Positions 265-57,459 of a DNA stretch of 64,000 nucleotides are shown here, piece after piece. The number at the start of each line of letters is the position of its first letter. Positions within the stretch are counted from its first letter, which is position 1. The stretch is from the NCBI GenBank assembly GCA_964247055.1, contig OZ176054.1, positions 7,750,001 through 7,814,000 of the forward strand. The letters run 5' to 3'. A program made the position numbers and the translations under genes. Source of the stretch: Paragordius varius. Its lineage: Eukaryota > Animalia > Nematomorpha. The notes under the pieces are model-generated. The model was not told the DNA's origin, made no database searches, and was given only the letters and a program-made list of their open reading frames with translations.

Positions 265-505
265 CAGAGGCGTAGCTTGCATTTCTGGCGCCTTGGCGCA
301 TGAAACTGTGATGGCGCCCCCTCCATGCGACCCCTTGCATTTTAAAAAATAATCAAAATCGAACCTGGGTGATTTATGTATTATTTGAAATAATAACTTT
401 TAAATATCCATTTTTTGAAATAAATTTAACAAATTTTAATATCCGGCGTCCCTTTTAACTATGGCGGTGCATCAGCCTCCCTTACCCCCTCTAGCTACGC
501 TTCTG
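265..505. mobile_element. hAT-type MITE, family 1 (CAGAGGCGTAGC termini), copy 1
   Basis: Terminal inverted repeats CAGAGGCGTAGC / GCTACGCTTCTG. Flanks tgaatgtt (257-264) and ggaatgtt (506-513) form an 8-bp TSD with 7/8 match. Related copy at 42787-43052. Confidence 0.8.
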
Positions 506-1352: not shown

Positions 1353-4337
<2,985 letters not shown>

Positions 4338-5697: not shown

Positions 5698-6075
5698 TTA
5701 GTCCATCGATTTTTTATGAATGAAATTCCATTTATCACCTAATTGCCACGATATTTATAAATAAAAATTGGAATTTCATCTATATTCATGGAATACATTA
5801 ATATAGAATGATTATATCTATCATTAAATATTTATATATCAAAACAATATTTTTTTATGAATTCTAAAGCAAAATATCCAAATAACTTTTATTTCATGGG
5901 TAAAAAACAATAATTTTTAATTTTTTATAAATCCATTCCATTTATCAACTAATCATCATAAATATTTATATTAATTAGATAATTTTTTTATCTTTTCCCA
6001 GAATATTTAAAAACAAAGATTTTTCAAACGAGATATCAAAATATTGAAAAATCATAAACTAAAAAATGAAAAGGG

Positions 6076-6117
<42 letters not shown>

Positions 6118-8272
6118 ATTTGGATGTTCGAATTCGGGATAGGCCATCTGAAATTCTGGTTGCGAATTAACAAAACTTTTAGCTTCCGCTGGCGTGGTTA
6201 AATTAAAGGCATAATCAGTGTTTGTCAAATTTTTGCTAAAAAATAATGTAGTAATTTAAATTAATTGGTTGGACCAAAATATTACGATATGTAAAAATAT
6301 TTTTCTAAATCAGTTATTAATTACCAACATATTTCTTCAACGTTGCTAGGACTTTTAATCAAGCGTTTCCAGGATTCGTGAACTTCTTCAATCAATTTTA
6401 AAGTATACTCCTAAATGGAGAATATGGTTAGAAAGGGTAGGTAAAAAAATCAAGACTCTAAATTGTGTGCTACCTCGAAATAATTCATATTTATAATTAT
6501 TTCTACTTTATGGTTTATTGAGACGAGTTTTTATGTAACACATGTCTTTGTGTACAATTAATGTTTTTACAGATTATTACGAAACTGGCCTTTGCCGTTA
6601 GCGCATGTTCCAGCCAACACCGCGGGGAGTTGGAAATAAGACTTTGACGGCCCAACCCACGGATATATTTGATGATATCCTTATTGAGTTTTTATTTGTT
6701 TATGGCTTATTTGGGCCCAGCAAAATAACAAAGGTTGATTTAATATTGTCAACGAAAACGAATATTTTATGTTAAAATAATAATTTGAATTCTAGTAAAA
6801 TTTATTTAATTAAACTATATCCAAAATTTTCGATACATGGGAATATCTTTTTCAATGGATATTAACTAAAACAAAAGAAAATAATAATAAGTTATAATTA
6901 AAACAAAATTTAAAAAATATAATTATAAATTATGATAACAAAACTCGGAAAAGTGTACACAAAGATCAGCATAAACTAATTAGTTAATTAAATATAATGT
7001 AAATAAAGCATAGGATATCTAAAAAATTAAACTTATAATAATCACCTTATTTTTGTATTCGCCATTGAAACCAAATTTATTTTCACTTTTCCCAGCTGGT
7101 ATTTTATAATATCTAAACCATTCTACAGATCCCTATTATATATAAAATATTCAGAATATGTTTTGATAGCATAAAAACAAAATATTTACCTTCAGATACC
7201 CGGGCATATATTTTTCAACATCTTCGATATCTAAATATTAAAATTTAAATTTGTTATATTTAAAATTATAAAAATAATAAAAAATAATATAAAAAACCAT
7301 TTAATTTGCTAGCCATTTCATCTTGCGTACGTATAGTAACAATTTTCCAGTCCGTCTCTCCTTGAAAGATAAATAAAGATGTTTATTATATTAAGATAAG
7401 ATAATAAAATTTCGATATCTATCACATGCTAAAATTTAAAAGTTTTAGAGATATATAGAACGTCCGATATCAGACAAATAAATATATTTTTTGGGCAGGT
7501 GATATTAATTATAATTGGGGTTTTGTAGCATTTCATTAAATAATTTTTATATTTTTTAAAAGATAGAATTGTTTTTATGTAGAAATTAATTATAAAGAAA
7601 TATAAATATTTTAAAAACCTTGATCAAGTAGGCAGAGAGCACCCAAAACCTTAACCTCGACAACTTCACCAGATCTTAAAATTCTTGAACCAATTTCTAA
7701 AACATCTATGGGATCGTTATCTCCACGGCAGTGAGTATCAGGATTTATATAAGCTGGATCTTCCCAAGTCTAAATTAAGAACAACAAGGTATTCAAATTT
7801 ATTATAAGTGAATATAATTTAATTAACCTGAGGTAAAGCACCGTAATTCCAAATGTAACCTGTGTATGGAAACACATTATCCACATACCGAGGTACACCA
7901 CTTTTGGTATCTTGGTGAATGGGATTTAAATATTCCTTTGTAGATATCTTAAAATAAAATAATTATAAACTTCAAATTTAGCCGTTGACCACCTAGGAAT
8001 TTCCACAACCATATTAAAAGTATTATCCACTCTATTGTGATGAAGAGGAATGTCATGAAAAGGGGATATGTAATGACCATGTTCATTAACTAAATATAAA
8101 ATTACATCTTACCAAAAAATAATTTATAATCAGTAGTGTAAATTTTTCCAGTTGGAACTGTTTGTACCATTTTCTTCAAAGGTGTATGACTTTGATATGT
8201 ACCTGACAATGTAAACACGTTAAACACCCTCGGCAATGTACTAATGATCCGACGGTCGAAAAGGGATTTCAT
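5698..8272 (-). CDS. PPA1: Family I soluble inorganic pyrophosphatase (PPA1/PPA2-like)
   Basis: Exons (minus) 8272-8113, 8089-7971 ([21 protein letters not shown]), 7947-7828 ([14 protein letters not shown]), 7769-7619 ([29 protein letters not shown]), 7360-7298 (ETDWK), 7230-7190, 7132-7046 ([14 protein letters not shown]), 6410-6325, 6235-6117, and last exon 5948-5917 or 5738-5698. Contains the DxDPxD catalytic motif. Confidence 0.95.
6079..6115. repeat. (TA)n microsatellite directly after a splice donor of the pyrophosphatase gene
   Basis: Pure TA run; on the minus strand the exon ends AATG|GTATATATA... Confidence 0.95.
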
Positions 8273-8471
8273 GCGTTGAAAGAGTATATTATTCAAACAA
8301 TGTTTACATATAAAAAGTATTATTTTTATTTTGCCTGCAATATACTTTATTTATAAAGGGGTATAATTTACCTCATAGTTCAATTTTAAGCAGGCAACTT
8401 TTATATACAATTTATCTGAATAATTTTACCATATCAAATGCAAATCTTAAATAAAAAAATATGTGAATTAA

Positions 8472-9030
8472 CACTTCGATTCAAATTGGGGTATCTAAAT
8501 ACCCCAGACTAAATTTAAGTTAGATTAAAAAAGAAGAAAACGGTCCCAATTTAAATGTATGCTTCTATCCTAATAAAAATTATAAAAATATGCCAAAATT
8601 TTAAATACAATTTTGTTTTAAAAAAAATGCTCCATGTCAAACTACTTCGACGCCATTTTTATTTTACAAAATTTTTGCAAAATCTCGTCTTCTTTTAATT
8701 TTAAGGGTAAAATTAAAGTTAATTTTTTATTTAAATTACATCTAAGATTGATAGAAATAAAAAAGCGGTTTATTTTGTATTAATATTCAATTTTACTATT
8801 GTACACATGTCACATTGATTAAATTTTTACATTTTTAGCTTAAAATAAGGAATATCGGTATTTTGGAATAATGTTTTTTATATTATTTCGGTTTATTAAT
8901 GTTATTGTGCAAAATTTTGCCATGGTTTTCCTTCCATATTTTATAAAGAATTTAATTTTAAACAGGCCTGGGTAATCCAACTACACCAATTTGAATCGAA
9001 GGACTGAAATGAATGCGTTGTATCCAAGTG
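8472..9030 (+). mobile_element. piggyBac-like MITE, copy 1
   Basis: TTAA TSD at 8468-8471 and 9031-9034. Termini CACTTCGAT / ATCCAAGTG. Subterminal inverted repeat TTCGATTCAAATTGG at unequal distances from the two ends. Confidence 0.85.
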
Positions 9031-9522
9031 TTAAATTAAATTAAAATTTTACACTCTAAGCACATTAGAACAAAAATATTACCATACTTTTGATATAAAG
9101 ACAATTTGGGTAAATTTTGACTAATAAGCTTAAATTTGATTTAACAATATAATAAAAGGTGTTTTGTCCAAAACATAATAATTCATTATATTTAAATATT
9201 AACACTTCACCTTTTTATTTAGTCTATCAAATTTTAAGTATTGTCAAAGCTTTAGTTATCTATTGGTTTGGAATATTTTATCATTGTCCTCCTGTAATAC
9301 TAAACCGTGGACCAGTGGCCGCATTCAGCTTAAAAATGTTTTTTTATGCCCTGAATTTTTATTACATTTTTTATGTATATCTGGAAGAAATATCTGCAAT
9401 TGTGTCAAACAGCTATGAAATGTTTATTGGCATTATGGCTCTTGAAAAAGGAAAAATTTTCGGCCCAATAAAATTTTTGGTTAGTATCACTATTCTAGAA
9501 TCCGAATTTTGGATGTCTTTAA

Positions 9523-10095
9523 CACTTCGATTCAAAGTGGGGTATCTAAATACCCCAGACTAAATTTGAGTTGGGATTTTTATGAAACTACTGAAGGAAA
9601 CGGTCCGAATTTATATTTATGCTTCTATCCTAATTAAAATTATATAAATATGCCAATATCTAAGTAAAATTTTGTTTTGAAAAAAAAGTTCCATGTCAAA
9701 CTTCTTCGCGCCATTTCTATTTTACAAAATTTTTGCAGAATAATGTCTTCATTTAATTTTAAGGGTGATTAAGGCTGATTTTTTATTTAAATTACATCTA
9801 ACATTGATATAATTAGAAAAAGCGGTTTATTTTGTATTATTTTTTAATTTTACCATTTCACACATGTCACATTGGCCAAATTTTTACCTTTCGGTAGCTT
9901 AAAATAAGTTATATCAGTATTTTTGAATAAATATTTTTATATATATCGGGTTATTAATATTATATAAGTGCAAAATTTTGCCATGGTTTCGATTCCTTCC
10001 ATATTTTATAAAGAATTTAATTTTAAACAGGCCTGGGGTATTTAACTACTCCAATTTGAATCGAAGGACTAAAATGAATGTGTTGTATCCAAGTG
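9523..10095 (+). mobile_element. piggyBac-like MITE, copy 2
   Basis: TTAA at 9519-9522 and 10096-10099; collinear with 8472-9030 over its length. Confidence 0.85.
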
Positions 10096-10249
10096 TTAAA
10101 CCCGATTGAAACAAACAACTGACTTCGTTGTTAATCCTTCACCTTGTTTTAAAACAAATTAATATTTTACCGGTATTTGTACGGCTTTTTGGTTAATACT
10201 CCACTACTTGGAAATTTTATTTTATTGTAATTTTTATTCTTTTCCAAAA

Positions 10250-10650
10250 TAAAAGATTAAATTTATTATATCTCATAAACCAGATGGCAAAAAAATGAAA
10301 AAATAAAAACAATATTTTATTAATTTTATTTTGATATATAAATTATTTTAACTGTATAAAATATGAATCCTAAGATTTTAATAGTGAGATTAGCTAGAAA
10401 ATAATTAAAACAATATTTTTATATATATAAATAAAAAATTTATGTATATAAATTGTATTATGGACAAACATGATTTTTTGATCTGAACCTAGTTATATAT
10501 TTTTAAGTTATTTAAAAATTGTTAATATCCGATAAAAAAATAATAAATTTTACTAACTTTCCTTAATTTTCACTTTTTGGCCGATTCCGATTTTCGCTCA
10601 ACATAAAAACTTGGTCGCCAACAAAAAAATTTTCCGGCAAATACCGCAAA
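10250..10650. repeat. Orphan diverged copy of one arm of the 11001-12190 foldback element
   Basis: Blocks CTCATAAACCAGATG, TAAGATTTTAATAGTGAG and CTTAATTTTCACTTTTTG match 11700-12120 in direct orientation. Boundaries approximate. Confidence 0.65.
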
Positions 10651-11000
10651 TTTAGACAAACCAAAAAATAACCAAAACTATCATATCTATGAAATTTAGT
10701 AAATTCAACTGCATATGGTATTCTTAACCAAAACTCACAGAAAAGGAATAGAGTAATAGAAAGGCAGGGTAGAATAATTACAAGCAATTAGGTGCTTGAA
10801 GAGTCTTATAAAATAAGCTGTGAAATCACAATATAATAAATTAGATCGCTCTTTTATGCACCAAAAAAATTTAGTATGGGTCTAAATATAGGTGGCAACT
10901 CACTAGAATTGGATAAGTAAAATCATCATAGATAGCATGGTCTCAAAAAACGATAGATGCTATATACGCATCAATACATTTTTAAGTAAACCCATATATA

Positions 11001-12190
11001 CACTGTGCAAAAAAAATTTTATTTTCATGAGATAGCTTATGACCAGCGTATTCATTTGTCGCAAAAATATTTGTTTACGACCTAATTTAAAATAAAAATC
11101 GAAATTGGGCAAAACGTGAAAATTATGGATAATTAGATAATTCAAAAATAATAATAAAAGTTGAGATATTATGGTTTATTATAATTTTAAGAGATATTTT
11201 TAATAATAGCCTATAATCATATAGTTAGAATTTCTATAAAATCTCGGTTCAAAAGATGGCGTTTTTCTTTTAACACACTTATAAGACAAAAATTTTTTAT
11301 GAAACTATATTAATTTTTTTTGATTATCCATTAACTAAACTCACTATTAGAATCTTAACATTCAACTTTTATTCAGTATAAAAAACTTATATATTAAAAT
11401 AAAAATAACAATTATTGTTTTTTATATTTTCATTTTTTTGTTTCTCGGTTTATGACGGTATAAAAAATTTAATGTATTATTTTGAAATTTTGCGAAAATG
11501 ATAAATTGATACAAAATAAAATTTACAAGTAATGAAAAATCAACCAAAAATCGATATCCCAATAAAAATATTAATTTGTGTTAAAACAAATTTTTTACAA
11601 GGATTTTTGGTTGATATTCCACTATTTTTAAATCCTATTTTACATAAATAATATAGTTTATGATTCCCACTCATGTAAGATTCAAATTAAACAGTATTAA
11701 TTCTGATACACTCATAAACCAGATGACAAAAAAATGAAAAATAAAAAACAATATTTTTTAGTATTCTGATATATAAGTTTTTTTTACTGAATAAAATATG
11801 AATTCTAAGATTTTAATAGTGAGTTTAGCTAGTAATAAAAAAATTATTTTAATTTAATTTCATAAATAATTTTTGTCTTTTGAATGTGTTTTAAGAAAAA
11901 CGCTATCTTTTGAACTGAGATTTTATAAATACCCTAACTATATGATTTTAGGCCATTTATATATTAATAATATCTCCTAAAATGATAATAAACCATATTA
12001 TCTCAACTTTTATTATTATTTTTTGAAGTATCCTTAATTATACTTAATTTTCACTTTTTGCCCGATTTCGATTCTCTCATAATATTTCAAAAACTAGGTC
12101 GTCAACAAATTAAAATTTTTGCGGCGAATGAATTCGGAGCTATCTCATGAAAAATTTAGTTAAAAAAATTGACCCTCTTTTTGCACACAG
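11001..12190. mobile_element. Foldback element with CACTG terminus (CMC/CACTA-like, non-autonomous)
   Basis: Left end CACTGTGCAAAA, right end TTTTGCACACAG. About 11010-11460 is a diverged reverse complement of about 11710-12160 (e.g. TTTTCATGAGATAGC / GCTATCTCATGAAAA). No convincing TSD. Confidence 0.65.
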
Positions 12191-12197
12191 ATATATA

Positions 12198-13666
12198 CCA
12201 TTTCCCAGTCTAAATAAACGTTTTCCCAGTCAATCGAAACATTTTCCCAATCAATCAAAACGTTTTCCCAGTCAATCGAAACGTTTTCTCAGTCAATCGA
12301 AACATTTTCTCAGTCAATCGAAACGTTTTCCCAGTCAATCGAAACATTTTCCCAGTCAATAAAAACATTTTCCCAATCAATAAAAACGTTTTCCCAGTCA
12401 ATAAAAACGGTTTTATTTTTGATGATATATATCAAAACAAGAATATAAAAACAACCTTTAACCATTATTATCGTAATATTAGGATATAATTTTATATAAA
12501 AACACAAATACTGAATGACAATTTTTCCAAGTATATTCCAGTGCACAATCATTAATGGCTTATTCTTTAAATGTTATATTTTTGGAATTTGAGTTAAGAT
12601 ATTTTTTTTATTTTATCGATGGTTCTCATTAATATATGCGGCTAACTTAAAAAATCTATAGTTACGGAGTAATTAATAAAATTTATAAAAATATACCATT
12701 TTTATCACAAAGGTCATTTAACACTTTATATTGGATCTTAAACATAAATTTTACGCTAACATAAATTTTACGCTAATTTTATAATCTTTATCATTTGGTT
12801 CATCGGGGACCTAAGACGGCCTTCCGAGTATCTTTGTGCGGGCCGCAAAAAATTTGGAAAACCATATGCAAAAATATGCCCACAAAATCTTAGTAATATT
12901 CATATTTCTTACGCAATTATTATGAATAAATCTATTAAATTGGTAATGAATTAAAAAAAATTGTTATATTGTGTTTGTATTTTACAGTCTAATAAAATTA
13001 TGTGAATGCCCTTATATATTTCGAATGGGGAACCGTGTGCTTTTTGAGTTAAACGTTCCGCGAAGGCATTTAATTGGACACCCTTGTTTTAGTCAAATAT
13101 CCTTTTTATTAAATATTTTTAAATCAAAACATTTTTATCAAAAAAATTTTCGTTAAGATATATTTTCCGACAGTATTTTTATCGACAAACCGGACATATT
13201 TAAAAACTATTGTGAAGCATTCTGCAAATATTAATGCGAACCATCGATAAAATAAACAATATTATCTTAACTCTAATTCCAAAAATATAACATTTAAAGA
13301 ATAAGCCATTAATGATTGTGCACTGGAATATACTTGGAAAAATTGTCATTCAGTATTTGTGTTTTTATATAAAATTATATCCTAATATTACGATAATAAT
13401 GGTTAAAAGTTGTTTTTATATTCTTGTTTTGATATATATCATCAAAAATAAAACCGTTTTTATTGACTGGGAAAACGTTTTTATTGATTGGGAAAATGTT
13501 TTTATTGACTGGGAAAATGTTTCGATTGACTGGGAAAACGTTTCGATTGACTGAGAAAATGTTTCGATTGACTGAGAAAACGTTTCGATTGACTGGGAAA
13601 ACGTTTTGATTGATTGGAAAAATGTTTCGATTGACTGGGAAAACGTTTATTTAGACTGGGAAATGG
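12198..13666. mobile_element. CCATTT-ended foldback element, family A, with ~440-bp near-perfect inverted arms
   Basis: TATATA|CCATTTCCCAGTC ... GACTGGGAAATGG|TATATA. Arms about 12198-12635 and 13228-13666, each with about nine copies of a 21-bp unit (CCCAGTCAATCGAAACGTTTT). Explains the mirror-image ORFs 12310-12552(-) and 13312-13554(+). Confidence 0.9.
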
Positions 13667-15030
13667 TATATATATTACAATAATGTAGAATGTTAGCTTT
13701 GAACCAATTTTAAGGAAAACTTGTTGTTAGCCCATTGAAATACCAAAGTGTATTTTTTTGAACATCTACTAAGCAAGGGTGTTTGAAACGTGTTTTTTAT
13801 TAACCCATTAGTTTTGCCCCCATGTGAAAATAACGGTTTTTGAAATAGTGGCATTAAAAGAATTTTCCGAAAAACATGGGAATTGTTTAATCTTTTGCGA
13901 GTGGGCTGAGGATATCAAAGCTGTTTTTTTGAATTAGCCTCTTGCGGTACAGCCATCCTTATAGAGTTTTTGAAAAAGTAAAACACTCCAATTTGCAATC
14001 CGAAAAGTTTAAGACCCATTGGAATTCAATGATATTTTTTTCATTTTTTTATCAAATGCCTAGCGTGAAAGAGCTATTTTATAAATTAAGTGCACCCTCT
14101 TCAATATACGCCTAAAAGTCATCGTGACAATAAAACGAATTTCTGGGATTTGCACAGCCTGATTTTATACATTACTTTTATTAATGCCTTCATAGTAGAA
14201 TTTTTTATGGCTCTTGAATTCAGTCCTATGTGGAGAAATAGTCCTATCAATTTATTAACCAATTTTTTGATAACCAAAATTTTAAAATAAGTTTGATAAC
14301 AGAAAGAGGTAACTTTAATAAAAACAGTTTAAATATAAACTTTGTGTAATAAGTAAAAATTAATTATGAATGCTTAAAAGTTTGTTAATATTTTTTAGTG
14401 AAATATGTTTGGATTTCATTAACATTCAAATTACCTCTCTGTTTATTGCAAATTTTGATTAAGTCGTTCACGAAAATCGCTATTATAGCGACGCCAGACA
14501 GCGACAAGCTGTATAAATAATTGTTTAAAGCTAGCTTTGATGCATATTCCTGGGCACCGTAAAGGTCTATCCAAATGCTACCTAAACGCAGATTATAACG
14601 ATTCCTTTTTAAATTAGTTTCTAGATTTAGTATCACTCTATAGAAGCGTAAGCGACACATCCATTTATATGCGTTAGCTAATTTTAAAATATCTAATTTT
14701 GAGCTCAGCTTAACACAGAGTGTTTTTCAAAGCTCAGGTTTTCGGCCCATTCATAAATGAAAACGGGGAAAATGCGACAAATATTTGAATCTTGTATAGA
14801 AGCTCTCATCAAATTAATGGCCATTCATAATTTCCTATTATGGCGACACTTATACCCTTACAAAAGCTATTGTTTTAATTTCAATGTAAAATAAAAACAT
14901 TCATAATACATTAATGGATAAAATGCCTTATAATATAATAATAATTTATTTACTATATTAATAAATAAAATATTTTTTTCTATTTTAATATATAAATCAT
15001 AAATACGGGTCTAACTACAAAAAGTTCTGA

Positions 15031-16248
15031 TTATTCTTCAGATTGTTCTGGATCTATGAATGGTTTATCGATAGCACTAAAAATGAATAAAATTAGTTTA
15101 TTAAAACATAATTTTGAAAATAAAAGATCTAATACTTAATAGCCAAAGCCCCACAGAAAGGACAATCATCGCTAATGTATTTTTCAATTTTCTCCTAGTA
15201 AAATACATTAAAAATAAAATAAACTTGGGCTAATTGTTTGATAAACTTCAAGTTAGTATCCAAACTATTAACATTATCGTTAATTAATTTTGCTATTTCA
15301 GGATTTCGCGTTGAGGCATCAGTGGAGGAAAAGCATAATTTTTCTGCCTCTTCAAAAATTTTGCAATCGTCTTTTGGTAATAACTTTTTAATCTTAATAT
15401 ATGCAAAATGTTATCTAAAATATAATAACCATTTCCCCCGTTAAAAAAAGTACCAATTAATTGGATAAAAAATAAATTTTACAATGGAGACACCTCTTTA
15501 ATAAGGCAAAGTATGTGAAAAGCGTGAGTACACGGAAAAACATAAAAGGAATTTTGAAGATTTTTATTACAATTATTAGTAGATAAAAGAGCAGTCTGAC
15601 AACTAACACATTTTTCATCAAGTTCCATGGAAAGTGGTCTAAAAAACAAAATATGAATTATTCATTAATCGGTTTAAGGGGTATGAATTTCAAAATAAAT
15701 ATACGAGTTACTTGTTATTAATAAAGGAAATTTCACTATGCAGGGTGTTAGCCGTTTTTCCATGTGCTTCTATTTCTTGATCCAAAGTTTTTAAATGCGT
15801 GTTATAATGATTGAGAGATTCCAAAATAGACTCCTATAGTATGATGTAAAAATCATATGATATTATCAGATTTGAGTATTGAGTAAATAATTTTTCTCAT
15901 AAACTGTTATATTAAATCTAAAAATGAAATATGTGTGTTTTAATGAGAGAAATTTAAAAAACGCCACATAATTAACCTTTTTGATTAAAATGTTTTATTA
16001 GAATTGCTATTTAGTGAAGAAAAATCTAAAATTAGAAAAATATATAAGGATGATAACTTTAAAACAATCGATCGTGTGGAAATCGGGGAAATATGGCAAT
16101 AAATCTTCAATTTCCAAACAAAATTCACTTTGCTTAATAAGGGTGTCGCACAACATTTTAAGTGCATCATAATTGGGGGATGAGGGGTTTTGTATTGTTT
16201 TATCGTTAACTTCATTAGTTTGTGGCAAAGATTTTATGGAATGTTGTG

Positions 16249-16314
<66 letters not shown>

Positions 16315-19300
16315 GTGTAAGGATTACACTGGACAACAAATTTTTCTGCCACTCGAGTTTTTTGCATTTTTTGATAATTAGTATCATTCTAACAGTAAAT
16401 CCGAAATAAAAATTATAACTCGTTGGAAGAATTTTGTATAATTTGATTTTTTTGATTATGCGCCCTCTTTATCAAATTTTATTAAAAAATGTTTTTCTTT
16501 GAAAATATACAAGTAATGCCCCTTTTGTAATATATCATTCGAAAGAGTAATAAAAACTCTTTAAAATGCATATTAATATGTATTACATCGACAGTTAATA
16601 TTGGACACAAAGAGCGACAAACGCGCGAAGCGAGAGCATTTTTTTTAATTACTATATTTTTAAAACTAATAGATAAAAATAGCTAAAACTTTGTTTAGAT
16701 GGTGATGAATGTCCAAAAAAGATAACACAAGAAAGTTTTTTTGATTAAAACATTTTTTTATTGCTTTTATGTCACTCAAAACAGCCATTTTTAAGTTTTT
16801 GTTTTTTAAAAATTACCATCTCATCAATATTAATTTATTTTCTTTACGAGGCTGATAATTTCGAAATTTTTCAAGATAATAACAAGGTTTAAGGTATATT
16901 TGATCTATTATAGCAATTATGTAATAAATTTACAGTTATAACTATGCATTTTAGTATCCACTAGGTAAAATATTTATGATAATAATAATTTTTATTAAAA
17001 AAGCAAACCAAAAGCTTTTTCAAACATTTTTTTTAAATTAAATACTAATATAACCCTAATAATTATATTAAAATAATTTATATGATTTTCAAATTAGTTT
17101 GTCTGTGAAAATTCTTGACTTATTTAAGGATTGAAAATTTCGACCATTTAAATCCAAATAACTTTTACATCCGATTGATTTAAATGACTTACTACCATTT
17201 AAAAGATGCAGTTTTTTGAGCTCTTTCGAATGATATAAAATACATGGCTTCATATTTTAAACTTTTAATTTTCGAAATTTCGAGTTGAATGTTAAATCGG
17301 AGCCAAAAATTATCGATAAACTCTAATATAAAAATATTCTTTCATGCTAGACCAATTTTCTTTTCAGATATACTAATTATGTACTTTAATGAAATAAATT
17401 TTAAATTTACAAGAATGGCAGTTAAAAAAAGTTAAAATTTGTTGTCTAGTGTTATAAAACAGACATATACACAACACAAAACTGGAATCATACACAAACA
17501 AATATGGGATGTTAAAAGATTTCCAAAATGTCGCTAAAACGGGGTCTATTTTTATTGGACTGAGAAATTGTAATGTTTACAATTTGTACTTTGTTTTAAC
17601 AATTGTTATTAATATTAACCACTTCTGAATTTCAATATTTGGGCAAATAATTTTAGTTTAAATGTCTTAATAATATATATATATTCTAATAAAAAAATTA
17701 AGATTCTCATGGCGTATTAATATTGGGGGCTTCTTAAAAAAGTTTTTCCACTTTTGTGCCAATTAATATAGAAAAGTTGCATAATTAGCGCACATTCATA
17801 TCATTCGGTATTTTCCGTGTTATGTTTTTAAAAACTCTTTTTGTTCGGATTTTTTCGCACATAAAATGTTTTTTGTATTTTAATGCCGACCAATAACAAT
17901 TAACAATTTATCCTTTTATAAAATGGTTTTTTTAGCGAGTTCCCTATTTTTGACAAAAGAGTAACTGTATATATTATAACGGTCAAAAAATATACTTATA
18001 AGTTGTTTATGCAAGTCTTTTTACTAAATTAAAGGACAAATTACCTATGACAATCCATAACTTTTTGCGAAATGGGTCACCCAAACCGACTTGATTCGCT
18101 GTAGATTTTGCCAGTTCAATGTCAAACTATAAATTTTCATTAACTTATATTATGATTAATTAAAAAAACAAATTACTGTTATTTCCGAAAAAATGAAATA
18201 ATATGTAAAAACTTGTAAAGCCAATTTAACAGCCGTTTCTATTTGACTCATAACTATGCGAAGATGAACACATGCCCGTAAATTATTGTAATCATGACAT
18301 ATCCTTAAAGCGAATTGCGGATCATAACATATTTTATTACGGTCCTAATAATTAATTAATAAACTTATACTACACATTTTTCACAAATATTATATACCAT
18401 TTGCACTTCAAGAGTGTCCTTGAACATTTCAAGTTGGTCCATGAATTCACGTTGGTCCTTAAGCATATAAGTTTGGATTTAACCATAATTTTAGCCTGTA
18501 TTTTTTACTTTATTATATTTAAACCTAATTTCTTTATTTATCATATATTTATTCATTTTAAATTAAATTTTTTATTCAAAAACCTCTTTTTATATTATCC
18601 AATTCAACAATAATATTAACTTGAAAATATTTTTAACGAAAAATAGGAATTAAAAACACAGAATTATTTTTTTTTATTAACAAGTTGGAATAATATTAAT
18701 ATTAAAATATTTAATAAGTGAGTAAAAAGATATACGGTTTCTAAATGATTAAAAGTTGATATTGATTTAAAAGTAAGAGAATGTGTTAAACTGATAAAAT
18801 AGATGAATGATACACGGTTTAATTGATAAAAGTTAAAAACAAAATAAAAGTGTTTAAGGAACTTAAAGCGGGACCAACATGATCAAGAAAACTCTTAAAG
18901 TGCAAATAGTAATGAAAAAAGTAAAATAAATTATTAGCAGATATTTATAAGGCTTTAAAAGTACCAAGCCTTGAGATTTAAAATAATTTAGTAGCTTGTC
19001 AGGTTGATGTTGGCAATATAAGGAGATTAAAAAATTATGAATTTCTCGTGAAACAAAACATGGGTTATTTGTTGACAGAATGTCGCCATCATTCTACAAA
19101 AATCAAATAAGGTTAACTTTTATATCCCATAAAAATAAATTTTCATTTTTAAAAAATTATAATTAAAAGTCAAGAAACCTGGAAAAATGGTGAATCGATA
19201 AATGTTTGATCCAAAAGAGTTTTTGCTCTATTGGTCGTTGTGTTCATAGAATATTCTTCATAACTTGAAGATTTCTGATTCCTTCTGCAAAATATATTTA

Positions 19301-22191
19301 TTAGTTAATATCGGTGATTTATAAGTTTTCCTTTTAGTCGTCTAAATGTTTAAGCATAAAAAATCAGTTTTTACTTTATATTGATTAAACTCTTGTAAAA
19401 CATACAATTTCTATCGATCATTTTACAGTTTTCGTTTTAGTGGTTGCTTATTTCACAGGTAGGGCTATTCGCAGCACAGAAGTGTCTCGAAAAAAGAAAG
19501 GAAAAATTTGTTTATTTAAAATTTTGTTGTTTTTTCCAACGCTACTGTGTTACAAATCGCCCAACTATAGTGTGAAATAAGCAACCATTAAAAAGCATAC
19601 TATAAACAAAAAAACTCGCAAATAAAATATAATATTATTTCAAACCTGGCTGAAACATATAAACCTCAAAAGATGATCATTAAAAGATTTCAACAAAAGC
19701 GATAATATAGTGCTGTTCTAGTAGATTAATATTCTAAATTACTGCATTAAAGGTGCATGGATTTTTAAATAAACATAGAAATATTTACGGTTGTTTGAAA
19801 CTCAAAATTTTGACCGAATCTGTCAAGAAAGATCCAGTTTCCTTTTCGAGGTAATCGGGAATTTTAGATTTAAAGGGCCCATTTGTGCCATGATGAAGCA
19901 TTGAAATGCAACTCCAATTAGATTGATCACGGGTATTATTTCCATTGGTTGTGAAATTATAAGCATTTTTATTTACATTAAAGCCCAAATCACCATTGCT
20001 TTGTTGAGTACAACTGAGTAATGTATCAAACAAGGAATAAGAATTAATTTCTTCTTGTCTTTTCTGAGCCGTGACACAAAATTCGAGGTATTCTATAACC
20101 ATGGTAACATACTTGTTGGTAGATGTGTTAACATTAACATTGTTGCTCATATTATCCTTTTTATTATGGTTCAAAGCAAATAGATTTGTAGTTTTTTGCC
20201 CAATAAAGTCTTCATTTAATTCTGTCCTTGATTCCAGCGATATAAGGAGTAAGATGATGCTTGAAAAAAGGCGGGAAGGATCTAACCATACTTTACGTTT
20301 TAGGTAACAATCTTTCCAACTTGCAATTAAATGCGACGGTGAATGCGTAATGATATTGGAGGAATATTTAAAGTAAAGCGTTGGATCATGCTAGGGTAGA
20401 AATAAGTAAATCTTGGAATTATCTTAAGATAAGGTAAGTAATAGAAATCGAAAATAATTATTCCAACCTGTTTGCTAAGGAATTGTATAGCCGTGTGAAA
20501 ATCATTTTTAGCAATGTAATATTCAATAATTTTGTCATAATCTGGAAATAAACATGAAATATATACAGATATATTTAATGATTGATTCAAAAACAAATGG
20601 AAAATATCATCTACCTTTACAATGTTCGGCAAATGTCAAATAAGCTTCGTCAATCCCATAACTTTGTATGACTTTAAATATGATATCCTTATGTTGTAAG
20701 AGGCAATCCTAAAAACATACATATAAATATTTTCAAAAATTTATCTAAAAAACTATCGTTCATGGATTTTTAAAAAAATATGATTATTGATATTGATATG
20801 GTAGGAGTTTATTTTATCCAATGATAAAAGTTTGAGGGCAAATTAATTATATGCAACTGTTTTATACATTAATCAATAAAGATATTTAAATTAGATTATA
20901 TTGTAAATTTTCTTGATAAATAAATAAATAAAAAACATTGGAAATTCTAATAAATTATCTACAAAAGTACTTGTATGATAGGGGTGGTTAAAAATTCTTT
21001 GAACCTGGCTATTATAGATTTAAATTTTTTAGTCGTTGTTTGAATTTCACTCTTTTCAGACGAATGTCGAATATTTACAGATGAAACTAATTTCGCGGCT
21101 AATTCATTTTCAAGGTCATTAACTTTATCGGGAAAATCAATACTTTTTTGCAAAAAGTTAGTCAGTAATGTGAGATATAACTGACAAATCCATAAAACTA
21201 GAATGGTTATTTGTTTTCGATCCTGTTGTTAATATATAAAAAATATAAATACTTGAAACGAATTCAATTCACCCCCTTTTAACATTAATGTGAGGTAAGT
21301 TATTAATCCATTATATAGTTTTTCTGTCATCAATGCATCATTAGATATTCTAATAAGGTTAATTAAGATATTGCGTACTTGTCAATCTGTTCATAAAACT
21401 TTAAACCAACTTCATTAATAGTTATTTTCCCGTCCTTTATAATATCTAAAATATAATAAATGATTAAAACAAAAAATTATATCTATATTGATTGAAATTG
21501 AATACAAACCCCTTTCATTATCGATCAATATTTTTGTGCATTTAGAGTAAAGTGTGGCGGCTTCTTCGTAATTTTCAAGAACATCAAATGTATAATTGGC
21601 TTGGGCTAAATCAATTTCTGATAATCTGGCTTTGGTTTCAGGGTTGTCGGAATTTGACCCCTTGAATTTTAAAATACAAATAAAAACATTCCAAAAATAT
21701 ACAATAGTAAATTAAAGATCTCAAAAATAAAAAGCAAATAGAAAATCTAAAAAACCGATTTTGAAAGATACGTAATCGCAATTGACTCGATTGAAATATA
21801 GGGTTATATCATATTAGCCATTCAAACACAAATTTAAATAGTAAAATGAGAATAAATATAAATATTTTACCCAACCTAAAAACTATTGCGATTATTTCGT
21901 CAAAAATAACGCTAATTCCCAATATAAAACATATAAAAAACGGCCAAAACAGGTATTTATGATAGTCGAAGATTTTCTAATTTTTAAAAAATTCTTACTT
22001 GAATGCAATATTTGCGGGCAGATTCATAATCTCCATTGGATAAAAAATATCGCCAAATGTTTCGACCTTCATCTGTTATGCGATATCTCAGCACAGCTGA
22101 TGCACAAAACACCCAAAAGCTAGAGATTATATCAGGATTAGTATTTCCTTTATCAATGCAAATACCCTTACAAGTACCATATTCCTAATCA

Positions 22192-22226
<35 letters not shown>

Positions 22227-25010
22227 CATTAGTTTGTACCTCAAAATAAGGAAAAAATATTTATTATTAGCTCTAAAAATATTTATTTCCAAATATTTAC
22301 ACCTAAGGTTATAAAGTTGATTTTACGCTTAATTTCAATCAATATGATTAACACATAATATTAAGAGGTTTGAGCAAAGATACAATTTAAAAATATCAAA
22401 AACAATTAAAAAATAAAAATTGATTGTTTTAAAAAGGGCTAATTTGCGTTAATGTTATTACTCTTAATTTGGGTCGATATCATATATTAATGCATATACA
22501 TAAATCAAATAATTAATAATAAATATACAATTTAATAAAAAAATGATGAGCATTTACAATGGGAATTATATCTTCAAAGGCGATTTCTTTCGTTTTAACA
22601 TTGATGGCTATTAGTCTAATTATAAATATATATTCTTATATAAACATTTGTTTTATCAAAATAATGAAATATAAAAGAACCACCAACCTATCTGGATAAA
22701 GTAATAAAATGTGAAATTGAGTAAGTATTGCCCCGCAACACTGGGTATCTTTACGGGCTAAATCAATGGTCCTGGGGTAAGGGAGCAAAGAATTATCGAT
22801 TAAAATTGAATCTGTACGCTTTGAAAACGTTCCGTCCAACGAACATAAATATATACCAGCTCCTTTAGATATTACAATTACATTATTATTAATAATAAAC
22901 ATTAACAGAGAAAAGTAATATTTTTAAAAATTAATAAACATTACACTTTAAATTTTTTTAATATAGACTAAAGAGAATGAATATTTTATGTGAATAAAAA
23001 AAATCTCGTATACAGTAAAAACTGAAATTATGCGGACAAAACGTAAAAATATAAAGCACAACCATCCTTTTTAATTCTCGATTTATTTCAATATAACTCA
23101 TTGTTTTAAATGGCATTTGTAGTAGAGATTATTACTAACACAATCATTCTTTATTTTACAATTGTAACTAAATAGGTTATATGAGAAAATTAAGGTTTAA
23201 AAAAGTATGGTCTTTTGGATAAACATATTTGTCTTTATATTTTTACGTTTTGTCCGTTTAATTTTAATATTTACTGTACTATATATTAAACAATATCCAA
23301 TATTATCAATATATATGGCAGTATCTTCTTGAATAAATGAATAAAATATAGCATTTATATAATATGCTAAAACTGTTTATTATCACGTTATAATTATCAA
23401 AATGAAAAACTAGCCACATAATCGATAAATATATCATATAGCAGCATTACAATATTCACCAATTCTTTTCATAAATCATGTACCGTTTAATTGTGCTTAA
23501 TGAGCAATCTTAAAAAAAAGATAATTTCGTCAAAGTTTGATTTCTTATTTTATTCTTTCAAATTTATTTTATATAATATATGTAATGCATATTATTAATT
23601 ACAAGCCAAGGCCGTTTTTGGCCTTATTATCCCTCCATAATTTTTAATAAAAGGTATAAGTGGCAAAAGAATTAAAATAAATGTATACCACATAACCAAG
23701 CCAATGATGTTGGAAATCTATCTTCTCGATTGGAATTAAGAGTTAAAAATGAATGAGGCAAATCTCCGGGCAACTCATAAAATTTTTCTATTGTGTGATG
23801 ATATAAAAGTGGTATAATATAAAATTATAGTCAAAATTAATTTATTTTAAAGTTTAATATTAAAACTAAATTAAACTAATTATACCTGGAATATTTTCAT
23901 ATTTTGTAAATATTTTGTATAAATATGGCGTATCATGTGACGAGGTGCTTTGAGTTGATGTTGGAACCGATATACTGTGAATGTATTGATATAATCGACT
24001 AAAAAGGTATAAATCATATATTGTACTGAGCAGTTGTAATTATTACAAAATATTTGTAAATATCATCCACATTTCGATTGTTGGTATTTGGTATTCGATG
24101 AAACGTTATGCCCTCAATGCTGCAAATTTTTTCTTTGCTTAAATTTATAATCTATTCCATATAAAATATATAAATAATCTTTTATAAAAACTAAAAATGG
24201 AAAAGTTTTGATATATAGCGCATTTATTTTTTTAGCGGTTATCGGTTTATATATAAATCAGTGTGTATATGTAAAATTTGGTTATATACTTATTAATTGA
24301 ATTAATTGATAAAGCTTAAAATTGAGTTAAATAAAAAATATTTATCTAAAATTATATTTTTCTGAAGTAAAGTGTTAAAAAATTATTATTCCCAATTTTT
24401 TTGGAAAAATATAATTTTAAAACATATTTACGGTTTTAGTGTAAAGCTCCCACGATGTTGGGAAAAAGGGTCTTTCTTCAGGAGATATATTAGTTTCGAT
24501 TACCAAACCTTTGGATGTTCCTAACAAAATCGAACCTGTTAATGCTTTATTACTAGTAGTTTCTTCATTCCATGCTAAGCATGTAATAATGTTGTCCTAA
24601 AATATATGACATCACATACTTTAAGCTTAGAAAGATATCGTAATTTTCTAGCAGATTTGGCAAGATATAAATTATCGCCCTGATATGTCGAAAGAATAGT
24701 GTGCAGGGCAGATGGATGTGTATGTAAATGGCTTATAAAGTAATCCTTGAATCCTGATGGATATAAAGAGTATAATGGCGAATTCAAGTAAACATCGATT
24801 TCTGCCATTAAGAAAAAATTAAACCCTCATGATTTTCTGGATCTCTAAGGTTTACCCTAATCAGGGTATTATTTTGTAAACCTAGCAAAACAAAATTATT
24901 ACAGACTGTCATGTGTTTAATAACATGCTTAGGCCTAGTTATGTTTGTTAAATATTATATATTTACTTAAAGTTAATCCTGTGTCTGCTAAATATATCAG
25001 AATGGGTCAT
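15031..25010 (-). CDS. VPS18: Vacuolar protein sorting 18 (HOPS/CORVET core subunit)
   Basis: Multi-exon. Motifs in VPS18 order: MTHSDIFSRHRINFK, LAWNEE..TGSILLGTSKG, FVIITTAHRLYQY, LTQFHILLLYPDRL, EGRNIWRYFL, DPTLYFKYS..WLDPSRL, VIEYLEFCV, EIHNFLISLY, YDPQFALRIC, LAKSTA..KKLWI, LEIEDLLPYFPDF, RING C-x2-C..FYVFPCTHAFHILC..CPFCG, IDKPFIDP, TAA at 15031-15033. Confidence 0.93.
16250..16311. repeat. (TA)n microsatellite forming the 3' end of a VPS18 intron
   Basis: About 30 TA units run directly into the minus-strand acceptor AG (16250-16249) before exon AQHSIK. Confidence 0.9.
18397..18909. mobile_element. CCATTT-ended foldback MITE, family C, copy 1
   Basis: TATA|CCATTTGCACTTCAAGAGTGTCC ... 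CTCTTAAAGTGCAAATAG; subterminal CCTTGAACA-type repeats. Better-preserved copy at 46216-46788. Confidence 0.75.
19426..19602. mobile_element. CAGTATGC MITE family, copy 1
   Basis: Inverted arms (TGGTTGCTTATTTCACA / TGTGAAATAAGCAACCA), TA-flanked; same family as 59068-59277 and 60393-60612. Confidence 0.75.
22195..22223. repeat. (TA)n microsatellite about 10 nt from a VPS18 acceptor
   Basis: TA run; minus-strand acceptor AG at 22186-22185. Confidence 0.85.
23013..23276. mobile_element. CAGTAAAAA MITE (best-preserved copy)
   Basis: TA|CAGTAAAAA..GCGGACAAAACGTAAAAATATAAAG ... CTTTATATTTTTACGTTTTGTCCG..TTACTG|TA. Confidence 0.85.
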
Positions 25011-25065
25011 GTTTTAAATTTGAATTTCCATGCGTATTGAATGGGCACGCATTAAAACATGTTGA
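25008..25065. promoter_or_regulatory. Very short head-to-head VPS18/CTDP1 intergenic region with dyad symmetry
   Basis: 55 nt between the inferred ATGs. Inverted motifs CATGTTTTAA / TTAAAACATG and ATGCGT / ACGCAT. Promoter function is inferred, not shown. Confidence 0.55.
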
Positions 25066-28000
25066 ATGCTTACCGAAATTTTGAGATTAGAATTGGAACA
25101 GCCTATTATAGTGAAAAAACATCAAATGCACGAAGGTGACATTATACTGGCAAATAATGTTTTGTTCACTTACAGTTTCGAAAATGAATTATCTAAATCA
25201 CAAACTTATAAAATCCCATTTACTGCTCAAATTAACAAAATTCTTTTTAATCGCAATGATATAATACAACCCAAGTTTTAATGCTAAGTTATATTATATA
25301 GTCAACCATTATTTGAGGTGATACCTGGGTGTTCGCATCCTACTCTACTTAAGGGTATGTGTGCAATATGTGGTCAATTAGTTTCCGAAATAAAATCCGA
25401 TAGTTATTTATCTATCATTCATAATACACCTCAACTCATCGTTCACCAAGACGTAATTTTTTAATTAACAAATAATGAGTTCTGACTTGATGATATCCTA
25501 ATGTGACCAGATATTTTGAACTTGGACGCAGTACAAAATTAAAACATACTTTGCCTGTATTTACATTATCGTGTGGTATATTACACAGTTTCCACAAAAT
25601 ATCCTGATGAAATATAAATATTCTGATAGGAAAATATCAGGATTATCATGATGTTTTTGGTTTTAACCTTGAATTAACGAAAGCTATTTACACTTTTATG
25701 GTAGGTGCTCCTATAAAATTGCATAAGGTGCGCAATTTTTTCAAATATATTTTTTGGTTAAAGCTAAATGCTTTATTAAAAATATCACTAAAATATAACA
25801 TATATAAAAAGCTAAAATATTGTTAAAAATTCTAAATTTTTAGATGTGAGCTCTGAAAGTCTCAAATTTTTTCGCTCTTTTAAAATGGACTGTTCTCTTA
25901 AAAATTCTGACATTGTGCAATAATACATATACTAAATTTTCACAACTAAATATATTTTTTACAAAATACACACTTTCAAAAATTTAATTTTTAGCAAAAT
26001 TTTGTTGAAGCGTAATTTATATTATTTTGAGCATGAAACGATGTAAACGGTTGAGATGTTATAACATATTATATATATAATTCGAATAATGCTAATTCTC
26101 AATCAAAATTTTGATTAAAATATTCGTTCCTTTCAACATCATCGAATTATTTAGAAAAAGGGATTATTATATCTTAAAGCGTTATACCGTTTCCATCATG
26201 CTTTGAAATCGTTAGAAGTACGCTTCAACAAAATTTCTCTAATTTATTTATGCAAAAAAATAAGAAAACTTAAAAAAATGAAAGTTTAGGAGAAAATTAA
26301 GTAATATCATACCTCCCACCTAATGAGTATAGAAAACGTAAAAACTCTTAATTTTTTAATACTAAAAGGAAGGGTTTGGAACCGGTGTAAAAAAAGTGGA
26401 ACCGCGATGGTTCTTTTAAAATTTCGCGGTTCAGGAACCGGTTCTTTATATTTAGAAGCGGTTCCATGTTCTGTTCCTGACTTTTGATCAAATGATTTTA
26501 CAAAATTATTATAATAATAATCCAATCAAAATATTAACAATTAAAAAACAATTTATTATTTGCCAAATGTATAGTGAAAGAAAAGTTTAGCATAATAAAT
26601 GAAACAAATTATAAAAATATAATAGGAAAATGTATAAGTACAAAGGTATATAATGAGTGTTAAATGAAGTATGGTATCTAAAAAAAAATTTATTTAACTT
26701 TAAAAAATTTTTGCACCAAGCATTTTGCTGTTCAAACTGCTTCTCAGGTCTGAAAATAAATTAAGGGTTAAAACTCCTTTCAACGGAGACCAATATATAT
26801 ATTAACATGTGTACTATAGCTAACCTTGAGTTATGACTATTAGTTTTTTTAAAAACAGCCAAATAGCCCAAAATTTAGAGAGTATCGCTAATATAATATT
26901 AGGCTCTTAGTTTTAGGTTTAAGGTATTTAATATGTAGTGGCACAATCAAATTTAAATAATAAAATAAAATTTTATAATAAAAATCATATGGGAACCAGT
27001 AATTAAGGGGGTGGAACCGGAACCGGGTTTTTTCGTAAACGGTCTGGAACCGCGTTGGTTCCATCCCAATGGAACCGGTTCATGCTAAAATCCCTGGGAA
27101 AGGGTTCCGGTTCCAAGCCCTGCTAAAAGGTTATTTCAAAATCATATGCCATATATAATAATTTTATATAATATGTTACGGGAATAACAATTTTCTATAG
27201 AATTTTCCGTTTAATAATTATAACAAAAAATGAACTTTTTAAACTTAAACATTTATTAAAATATCACAAATTAATTTTGCTAATATTAAATTTTGAGGCA
27301 CCCCTTTTTGCGGAACCCCTGAGTGAAAGAGTCATTAACCTGAATCTTATGGTGTGGAGTCCGAAATTTATAGTTTCGCCACTGCACGAAAGGCTGCAAT
27401 CCTAAGTTTGTATAATTTAAGCAGAAAATAAAATATTAACCAATTAAGGCCAATCTTTGTTTTTTACCGCAAAATAAACCATTTCTTTACAAATTATGGT
27501 GTTATTTTTACTGAGACTATATTAAAATCTAAAATAATTTTTTTGAATTAATAAAAGGTAATCTATATATTTATAAAAATGGAAAATGCTGGCTTTGTGA
27601 TCTGGTACAGAAAAACCGGTAGACCCAATCAAATCCAAATATCGAAAAAATATAATCATTTATAAATGTCCCGACAATAGCTTCGCCCTTTTTTTGAAAT
27701 AGGCCCCCAGTTCGGGCCCACCCCGTATGAAAAACGGTTTTTTTTGAAAACAGAAGTCCACAAAATCGTGTTTTTGAGACAATTTTCCGGAGAACGTGTT
27801 GGACCATTCAATTTCAAATATGATTTTTGTTTACTTATTTTCGATTGCGCCGAACATAGTCGAGTCACTTTTTTGATTTAGGCCCTCTTTTTACCCGCTC
27901 CCCCCGTAAAATGCCACCTTTTTCAAAAAACAAAGTCCACAAAAATAATTTTTTAAATCGATTTTTCGTCCTAGGTATGAGACCTTAAAAATTCAATAAA

Positions 28001-31000
28001 TATTCCACGTATTCCCTGTTAAAAGGCAAAAATTTTAGTCCACCGTTTATTTGATGATAGCTGCTGGGTAAGGAGCTACCCGCTAAAAACTGATTTTTCA
28101 TATAACTTTGTGAACTGTTTCCGGAAAACCGGTGATCCCAATCACATCCAAATATCGAAAAAATATAATCATTAATGAATGCCCCGACAATAGCTTCGCC
28201 CTTTTTTGGAATTAGGTCCCCAGTTCGGTCCCACCCCGTGTGAAAAATGGGTTGAGTCAATTTTTTGGAGAACGTGTTGGACCATTCAATTTCAAATATG
28301 ATTTTTGTTTACTTATTTTCGATTGCGCCGAACATAGTCGAGTCACTTTTTTGATTTAGGCCCTCTTTTTACCCGCTCCCCCCTTAAAATGCCACCTTTT
28401 TCAAAAAACAAAGTCCACAAAAATATTTTTTTGATTGTATTTTTTTGCCCACGGTATGAGACTGTAAAAATTCGAGAAAGATTTTTCGTATTGCCTGTTA
28501 AAAGGCAAAAATTTTAGTCAAGCGTTTCTTTGATGATAGATGCTGAGTAAGGAGTATCTATCATATGCATAGCATGTTAAAAGATATATGGATATTAATA
28601 CATTATTTATCCTCATCTATATATTTATAAAAATGGAAAATGCTGGCTTTGTGATCTGGTACAGGAAAACCGGTAGACCCATTCAAATCCAAACTTCGAA
28701 CCCCCCTCCCCCCCAGAAGTCCGAAGGACTTCCTCGGGCTGCGTAGCAGCACGAGATTCACGCTAGTTAATATATATTTATAAAAATTAAATTTTTCTTA
28801 ATATCAAAAAGCAGTACAAAAGTGAGCGCAGTACTGGCGCAGTTTTTTTCTGAAAACCCAGTACTGCACTGCGAAAAACAGCCTATCTGGTCACATTATG
28901 ATATCCTAAGTTCTAAAATATTATTTTATATGGATAAAAATCTGAAAAAATAAAATTATTACTGAAATATTTAATTTTTCCACCTAAAAAGATTTTGAAC
29001 TAGAGTTTTAAAAGTTAAAATGAAAATGTATATATGATCTCAAAAATATAATGATCATGCGTGAAAATTATATAAAATGATAAACGTTTAAAAACTAAAT
29101 TACATAAAAATATAAAGATAGAATAACCCCAATTAAGAAACAAAAATTACGATTCTCATGTTTTTACACAATTAAATATCTTATTGGGTAGCATGCTCTT
29201 ATCATGAGTCGAACCGATAAAGAGCGTCTTTTGTTGGAACGTAGGCTTATATTGGTGGTTGATTTAGATCACACGCTAATACACACAACCACAACCTATA
29301 ATACTCCACCAATCATTATGCATGCCGTGTCTCAAAACCATAATTTGTTAGAAAGTGTTTATAATATAAATTCGTATACGCTCCCTGGGGATCCGGTGCA
29401 TGTTTGCTATCATACTAAATACCGGCCCGGCGCTATGAATTTCTTGGAAGAAATGAGTTTAGTAATTTTATTAGATTTTTCTACCATTTAGTTAGTTTTC
29501 GGATGGTCTGTCTAGGGTTTAAAAGAGTTTTTTGAACTCTAAACCATTACTTTTGGATCATCTGTATTAACTTAAAATGGTTATTGTTTTTGATTTTTGG
29601 TAGGTTATTTTTGATATGTTATTTGTTTTATATTTAATATAAAAGTATAATATATAAGTTTCAAGTATAAAATCGAACCAAAAATAAAATTATATGAATT
29701 AAAAAATTGGAATCAGAACGGAATTATTTCGTTTAATACGGTTTTCTCAGACAATCAAAAAAAAACAGAGATAATACCCTTAAACGGTTCCGGTTTCGAT
29801 ACCTGTTTAATTCTCTAACATTGGAATAAAATTGTTTGTTCTAGGCAAATTATATGAATTGCACATTTGTACATTTGGGGCTCGACCGTATGCCAACATC
29901 ATTGCAAATATTTTGGATAAAGACGGACGCTTATTTAGTCGTCGCATTCTGTCGCGGGATGAATTTGTTGATTCTACCTCAAAAACACCGAATCTCAAGT
30001 AATATACAGTATGCATTTTAATGTATGTTAAGTAATTTTATTGCCAGTCTAATAACATAAATGGTTTATCAAATGCGTAAAATACTGATCCACAAAATTA
30101 TTTCGTAGTACACATATGAAAGAGGAATGACGTGAGAATTAACATAGGCTTTAATTTGATGGATATTTTGTAATGTTAAATTTTGAGAATATTATAGCAA
30201 TTTATGTTAACATTTGAAATATTGTTTACGTATTTAGATACGGAATTTTGTGATTTTTATCTTTAATAAATTAATAAATAGTAAAATAGGTATTTAAAGA
30301 TCATTTATGTTAATTATTCCAAATTTTTAATAATTAAAATTTTTCAACATGATATATACCTGTATTAATCAAAATTGGTATTATTATTTTATATAGTTGG
30401 TAAATTAATATAACACAGGTAAATATATATTTGTGAAATTTAAGTAGATTTTAGATTTTTTGTCTTTGATGTTTTGCATTGTTAATTATAAATAATTTTT
30501 AAGTATTTCAGACATTTTAATCAGGTAAAAATTGCGGTTTTTAATAAATTTATTCAAATTTAATTTTTTTTTTGTTTTTTATTATTTGTTGTTGTTGTAG
30601 CTAAGGTCGATTCCGACTAACTGCAACATTGAAAATATAACTTGTCCATTCACTGCGATTACCGGATCTGGTGCTTAGTTCGGATATGATTGGTTGGTTT
30701 CTTTGAGGATGTTATCCATCCAACGAGTTCGTCTTCTCCCTCTTTTACGAGCACCTGTCACTTTTCCCACCATCAGTGATTTTTCAAGTGAGTTGGCTCT
30801 CATAATGTGCCCCCGAAAAAGGAGAGTTTTTGCCGTATTAAGCTGCCTAGAAGTGACATTTCTGGGTTAATTTTATTTAAAATAGTGGTTTTTGAAATTT
30901 TGTCTGTCCATTTTATTTGGAAATGTTTCCTCCAAACCCATAATTCGAAAGAATATATTTGACGTTCGTCATATTTTTTCAGTGTCCAGCTTCCCCCCCC

Positions 31001-57419: not shown

Positions 57420-57459
<40 letters not shown>

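Follow-up and report, generated by a model that had tools for sequence, protein, structure and literature searches.

Genes at the Locus and Ten Very Short Introns

The stretch analyzed here is a 64,000-nucleotide (nt) window of the genome of the hairworm Paragordius varius (Nematomorpha; contig OZ176054.1, positions 7,750,001 to 7,814,000), with about 26% GC and many repeats. It carries genes for an inorganic pyrophosphatase (PPase), VPS18 and CTDP1/FCP1, in which ten introns of 23–32 nt, hereafter micro-introns, occur together with introns of several kilobases (kb). We conclude that the micro-introns are almost certainly real spliceosomal introns, a view confirmed at the level of DNA and by comparison with other animals.

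Gene models were built from coordinates alone, and relatives were sought exon by exon rather than with the joined proteins. All three models are complete and free of internal stop codons, and all 42 of their introns are GT-AG. PPase exons 2 and 3 correspond to residues 23–59 and 60–99 of PDB 6c45, leaving no gap across the 23-nt intron 2. VPS18 exons 2–4 match successive parts of Pfam Pep3_Vps18, with intron 3 falling between positions 62–100 and 104–149, and CTDP1 exons 3–5 correspond to TIGR02250 positions 2–71, 73–119, and 123–156; a BRCT domain was also found in CTDP1. Over its whole length, CTDP1 exon 1 is similar to a biotin/lipoyl domain (score 0.92), a lead that fits the N-terminal domain of FCP1. 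Neither PPase exon 1 nor CTDP1 exon 2 had a useful match in PDB, and Rfam gave zero matches within the window. For VPS18 exon 17, the VPS18 of another hairworm, Gordionus sp. m RMFG-2023, was the sole relative among 1.84 billion representatives; this protein is 47% identical over the aligned exons and, when compared with two insects, was top-scoring for 26 of the 27 exons. Taken by themselves, these results point to a nematomorph distant from Gordionus and away from an orthonectid, dicyemid or myxozoan.

The original prediction from this DNA had listed nine tiny segments whose removal was said to be needed to keep conserved motifs in frame. Their coordinates, lengths and terminal dinucleotides all proved correct, eight lying on the minus strand and one on the plus strand, and modeling added a tenth, VPS18 intron 13 (Table 1). 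GT and AG stand at the ends of all ten on the coding strand, where the chance of finding both at two preset places is 0.0016 (from the dinucleotide counts of the window). The need for removal was likewise upheld: the spliced models are open, and any single micro-intron, if retained, brings a stop codon at most 42 nt from its donor; this holds also for the three micro-introns with lengths divisible by three.

Table 1. Genes, micro-introns and multi-kilobase introns in the window (positions are those of the window).
Feature	Position	Strand	Length	Details
PPase gene	6036–8272	-		10 exons; ATG at 8170, or at 8272
PPase intron 1	8090–8112	-	23 nt	phase 1; if retained, stop 8 nt past donor
PPase intron 2	7948–7970	-	23 nt	phase 0
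VPS18 gene	15031–25010	-	1257 amino acids	27 exons
VPS18 intron 1	24935–24966	-	32 nt	phase 2
VPS18 intron 2	24802–24824	-	23 nt	phase 1
VPS18 intron 3	24597–24619	-	23 nt	phase 0
VPS18 intron 5	23999–24026	-	28 nt	phase 2
VPS18 intron 12	21350–21378	-	29 nt	phase 2; least secure
VPS18 intron 13	21223–21252	-	30 nt	phase 0; in-frame stop if retained; absent from the original prediction
VPS18 intron 25	15195–15224	-	30 nt	phase 0
CTDP1/FCP1 gene	25066–37857	+	743 amino acids	8 exons
CTDP1 intron 1	25275–25301	+	27 nt	phase 2; if retained, stop 4 nt past donor
CTDP1 intron 2	25453–29191	+	3739 nt	contains repeats
CTDP1 intron 4	29999–36011	+	6013 nt	mostly a single foldback element of about 5.7 kb

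Orthologous Intron Positions

The Gordionus VPS18 protein was spliced exactly onto its own gene, and each VPS18 exon of P. varius was projected onto it separately. VPS18 introns 1, 2, 3, and 5 (32, 23, 23, and 28 nt) coincide exactly on both sides with Gordionus introns of 49, 2895, 248, and 414 nt, and introns 13 and 25 (30 nt each) coincide exactly on the acceptor side with introns of 210 and 167 nt. VPS18 intron positions are mostly common to the two hairworms, and the shortest intron of the Gordionus gene, at 49 nt, is also its first. PPase was compared with a brachiopod (Lingula), two hemichordates (Saccoglossus and Ptychodera) and a damselfly (Ischnura). Its intron 1 shares codon and phase with introns of 4624 (Lingula), 4883 (Saccoglossus), 4570 (Ptychodera), and 76 nt (Ischnura), the downstream side being off by one codon, and its intron 2 shares codon and phase with introns of 1259, 566, 3009, and 80 nt, respectively.

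Thus eight of the ten micro-introns lie at intron positions of other animals; VPS18 intron 12 has no Gordionus match, and CTDP1 intron 1 lay outside the comparison. Six are pinned on both sides, five exactly and PPase intron 1 within one codon. Since eight of the ten occupy positions used by other animals, most micro-introns are very probably old introns that shrank, and an introner-type (transposon-made) origin does not fit these eight common positions. Beyond AT richness, no common sequence was found among the ten.

VPS18 intron 11 (64 nt, 21446–21509), like its neighbor intron 12, is without a counterpart in Gordionus, whose gene has an extra intron inside the region of exon 4 of P. varius VPS18. 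As judged from the two genes, these differences reflect intron gain or loss within hairworms.

Intron Length Classes and Splice Signals

The 42 introns fall into separate length classes. The shortest ten measure 23 (four introns), 27, 28, 29, 30 (two introns), and 32 nt, the next measures 57 nt, and the longest reach 1796, 3739, and 6013 nt, with none between 33 and 56 nt (crude P = 4e-6). Seven introns are shorter than 30 nt and nine are at most 30 nt; the median is 79.5 nt and the mean 429 nt.

First introns are usually the longest in most animals. Here, micro-introns make up six of the nine introns in the first three places of a gene vs. four of the 33 later ones (p = 0.0025, from three genes only). 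In line with the original prediction, six of its nine segments occupy, without interruption, the opening intron places of their genes, namely introns 1 and 2 of PPase, 1–3 of VPS18 and intron 1 of CTDP1.

Micro-intron interiors contain 87% AT compared with 66% in exons, and all score as non-coding. Their signals comprise little beyond GT(A/T) and YAG: in this small sample position +3 is A or T, and positions +4 to +6 are unconserved. A YTRAY-like motif occurs at no fixed distance in five of the ten, vs. 18 of the 32 longer introns. The U12-type donor consensus RTATCCT is present in none of the ten.

Long Introns and Transposons

The two multi-kilobase introns predicted for CTDP1, of about 3.7 and 6.0 kb, were recovered as introns 2 and 4 (Table 1), and the continuity of TIGR02250 from position 119 to 123 across intron 4 indicates that the longer one is real. 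Most of intron 4 consists of a foldback element with nested inverted arms (30004–35723), which spans intron positions 6–5725 and contains decayed frames of a non-long-terminal-repeat (non-LTR) retrotransposon at about 30600–32900; without the element the intron would measure about 290 nt. The longest introns therefore grew, at least partly, by transposon insertion. Because this element of about 5.7 kb begins only about 6 nt after the donor, insertion beside a donor is evidently tolerated. This, together with the finding that the introns that are tiny in P. varius reach 2895 nt in Gordionus and 4883 nt in Saccoglossus, leaves without support the suggestion that introns near 23 nt are too short for transposons to colonize; a short intron is merely a small target. 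The wider proposal, that both extremes of length are handled by one spliceosome in a non-compact genome, held in part: micro-introns do occur in the same genes as kb-long introns, one of which is mostly transposon, but the accompanying contrast did not survive, as tiny introns are not limited to compact genomes.

Other repeats lie within or near these genes. A second foldback element (12191–13673) has arms of 424 nt that are 98% complementary, each made of about ten 21-nt tandem units. VPS18 intron 21 (1796 nt) has a (TA)31 microsatellite (16249–16311) directly before its acceptor and no pyrimidine tract, and PPase intron 9 is mostly (TA)n.

Proposed Explanation and Alternatives

Taken together, we consider it very likely that the micro-introns are U2-type introns, mostly ancient, that shrank to 23–32 nt in this nematomorph lineage, the other introns being at least 57 nt long. 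We have little doubt that they are real introns. One objection is that some of the segments are parts of ordinary introns of at least 45 nt that use other GT or AG sites, the likeliest cases being VPS18 introns 12 and 25 and CTDP1 intron 1, for which in-frame alternatives of 50 nt, 75–81 nt, and 114 and 138 nt exist, respectively. However, this fails for the six introns pinned on both sides, and all in-frame GT..AG alternatives of at least 45 nt delete at least 7 residues (7–29 for the shortest alternatives), mostly conserved ones where homologs are at hand. The 50-nt alternative to intron 12, the shortest one, has its donor G (21399) replaced by A in the other haplotype; the replacement is synonymous, and of the four changes listed in that exon three are synonymous. 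The two exons flanking intron 12 both show a weak alignment to a single Gordionus exon, each in a different frame. For intron 25, VPS18 exon 25 is 168 nt long vs. 105 nt for the matching Gordionus exon, which favors the alternative, and the 81-nt alternative would take 51 nt, or 17 poorly conserved codons; this stretch nevertheless has a coding score of +5.1 bits, whereas all 29 intron starts score at most +0.5 bits and the exon median is 6.4 bits. The tail of CTDP1 exon 1 likewise scores as coding (+7.4 bits) and forms part of the lipoyl-like domain. We therefore regard the ordinary-intron explanation as very improbable. Still less credible, to the point of being nearly negligible, is that the segments stem from misassembly or were inserted into dead copies of the genes. 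Over 2,300 codons the reading frames show no other disruption, the segments sit on ancestral intron positions with GT..AG ends, and six of them are also present in contigs from another sample or from a second study. One such contig from another sample covers 24396–25463 (VPS18 introns 1–3 and CTDP1 intron 1) and shows 16 substitutions but just 6 gap letters there, one, also from another sample, covers 23865–24153 (VPS18 intron 5) with 3 gap letters, and one from the second study covers 21253–21441 (VPS18 intron 12) without gaps. The assembly artifact envisaged in the original prediction as a possible refutation is thus excluded for the six of the ten introns so covered (VPS18 introns 1–3, 5 and 12 and CTDP1 intron 1).

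A different kind of alternative accepts the introns and explains them by a lineage-specific change in splicing, for example a variant U1 that reads AA exon ends and thereby shifts pairing into the exon. The exon preceding the donor ends in A for eight of the ten micro-introns vs. nine of the 32 longer introns (p = 0.008), and in AA for seven of the ten vs. eight of the 32 (p = 0.02); with a hypothetical U at position 9 of U1, micro-introns would gain in mean exon-side pairing (2.2 instead of 1.5) and the long ones would be unaffected. Yet the excess comes from a small sample and was noticed post hoc, no U1 gene lies in the window, and four of the six orthologous longer introns of Gordionus also follow A, so that the exon-end A is older than the shrinkage and is due in part to constraint from the encoded protein. 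We consider such a change doubtful. In its fuller form, a second splicing mode for introns of 20–32 nt, with its own AA signal and perhaps a variant U1, would have evolved beside exon definition after the split from Gordionus, and the gap at 33–56 nt would mark the switch between the modes; this too we think unlikely, a tentative idea at best.

Several points weigh against shrunken U2-type introns as the general explanation. No branch motif is shared among the ten micro-introns. VPS18 intron 12 lacks a Gordionus ortholog and is polymorphic at donor +5. The case for CTDP1 intron 1 consists of a stop codon, the lipoyl-like domain lead and the coding score. The direction of change is judged to be shrinkage on the ground that all compared genomes have longer introns at these positions. 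Finally, the four sequencing runs mapped over 20300–25700 are all genomic DNA covering the introns, in which no splicing was seen, and none of the runs found to contain this stretch is registered as RNA. This region is highly polymorphic between haplotypes and samples, locally by up to about 6%, and the changes inside the 29-nt intron 12 lie at donor +5 (21374) and at 21360.

How introns of this size would be spliced, and why they shrank, can be put forward with about even confidence. In the mechanism that we propose for these shrunken introns, the ordinary spliceosome would recognize each micro-intron across its own length (intron definition), relying on a minimum of signals, namely GT, YAG, an AT-rich interior and a loosely placed branch A. 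Because U1 and U2 are hard to seat together on 23 nt, the 5' and 3' sites would be engaged in sequence or in a compacted form, and the kb-long introns of the same genes would need exon definition. A bias toward deletions that selection did not oppose, most marked near gene starts, may have pushed introns into the short class.

There would be practical consequences, in that gene prediction and read mapping run with a higher minimum intron length would disrupt the first exons of genes of this kind, and reports of gene loss for Nematomorpha could be inflated as a result.

Neighboring Genes and Other Features

PPase has an upstream in-frame ATG, and the added stretch (8171–8272) would encode a basic leader of 34 amino acids that is probably a mitochondrial presequence. 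Within this stretch lies a further 29-nt GT..AG segment (8174–8202) that ends 3 nt before the second ATG; its removal by splicing could, hypothetically, yield a cytosolic form of the enzyme. VPS18 and CTDP1 are arranged head to head with start codons 55 nt apart (25010–25066). Given this distance, either their leaders are very short or the transcripts overlap the neighboring gene. In Gordionus, CTDP1 was not found within 10 kb of VPS18.

Further along the window, an intronless open reading frame (ORF) of 588 amino acids (39311–41077) resembles on visual inspection a multi-pass membrane protein, possibly a divergent G protein-coupled receptor; it had no Pfam match and no homolog by word search. 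A CLIP-170-like gene at about 50776–63807 has a CAP-Gly-like motif recognized by eye, a coiled coil and a CLIP1 zinc knuckle; no micro-intron was seen in it in this by-eye reading, the gene not having been modeled.

Comparison with Known Systems

In a survey of 51 animal genomes published in September 2026, introns shorter than 30 nt are reported only from myxobolids and dicyemids, and the question of how such introns are recognized is left open (Hadjez et al., 2026; PMC13644364). Hairworms are not mentioned in its main text. The literature searched contained no paper on short introns in Nematomorpha, and the two hairworm genome preprints searched do not contain the word "intron". Judged from the gene sequences described above, the lineage of P. 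varius is probably the third among animals with introns shorter than 30 nt. A third, independent case, in an ecdysozoan, would be useful, since normal introns persist at the same codons in a relative whose genome is sequenced; comparison of small nuclear RNAs (snRNAs) and splicing proteins with those of Gordionus would directly test what allows an animal spliceosome to work below the usual limit of about 40–50 nt.

The closest parallel is with the myxobolids (Henneguya salminicola, Thelohanellus kitauei and Myxobolus spp.). They also have GT-AG introns shorter than 30 nt at conserved animal positions, a donor reduced to little more than GT followed by A or T, and an AT-rich parasite genome, but their median intron is 22–27 nt (given for three species), whereas here it is 79.5 nt and micro-introns are ten of 42 (PMC13644364). 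Also unlike the myxobolids, the genes studied here show a gap at 33–56 nt and a bias toward gene starts, and belong to an ecdysozoan whose relative Gordionus has introns of 49–2895 nt at the same sites. The earlier view that tiny introns are confined mainly to compact genomes was overstated, since Myxobolus honghuensis, listed among the short-intron species in the survey (PMC13644364), has a large, transposon-rich genome of 206 Mb, of which 58 Mb are transposons, and introns that average 507 base pairs (bp) (PMC8855578). The coexistence of micro-introns with long introns and transposons is therefore not new, being known in M. honghuensis, and two length classes also occur in Trichomonas.

Dicyemids, represented by Dicyema, are, like hairworms, parasitic bilaterians with short spliceosomal introns (median 27 bp) at a normal intron density; however, about two thirds of their introns are shorter than 30 bp, compared with seven of 42 here (PMC6543705). 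The type A and type B introns of Trichomonas resemble the P. varius introns in forming classes of about 23–28 nt and at least 50 nt (50–196 nt there) in a repeat-rich genome, but Trichomonas is a protist in which only about 63 genes contain introns, motifs are strict and kb-long introns are absent, whereas the genes studied here are intron-rich with weak motifs (PMC12316389). Ciliates such as Paramecium (about 25 nt) and Stentor (15–16 nt) also remove introns of at most 30 nt by canonical spliceosomal splicing, and avoidance of steric clash has been proposed for Stentor (PMC8997360, PMC9505925). Unlike P. varius, these ciliates have introns that are essentially all tiny, so that no long-range exon definition is needed. 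What is distinctive in P. varius is that micro-introns form a minority class, set apart by a length gap and biased toward the 5' ends of genes, in an animal whose relative has normal introns at the same sites.

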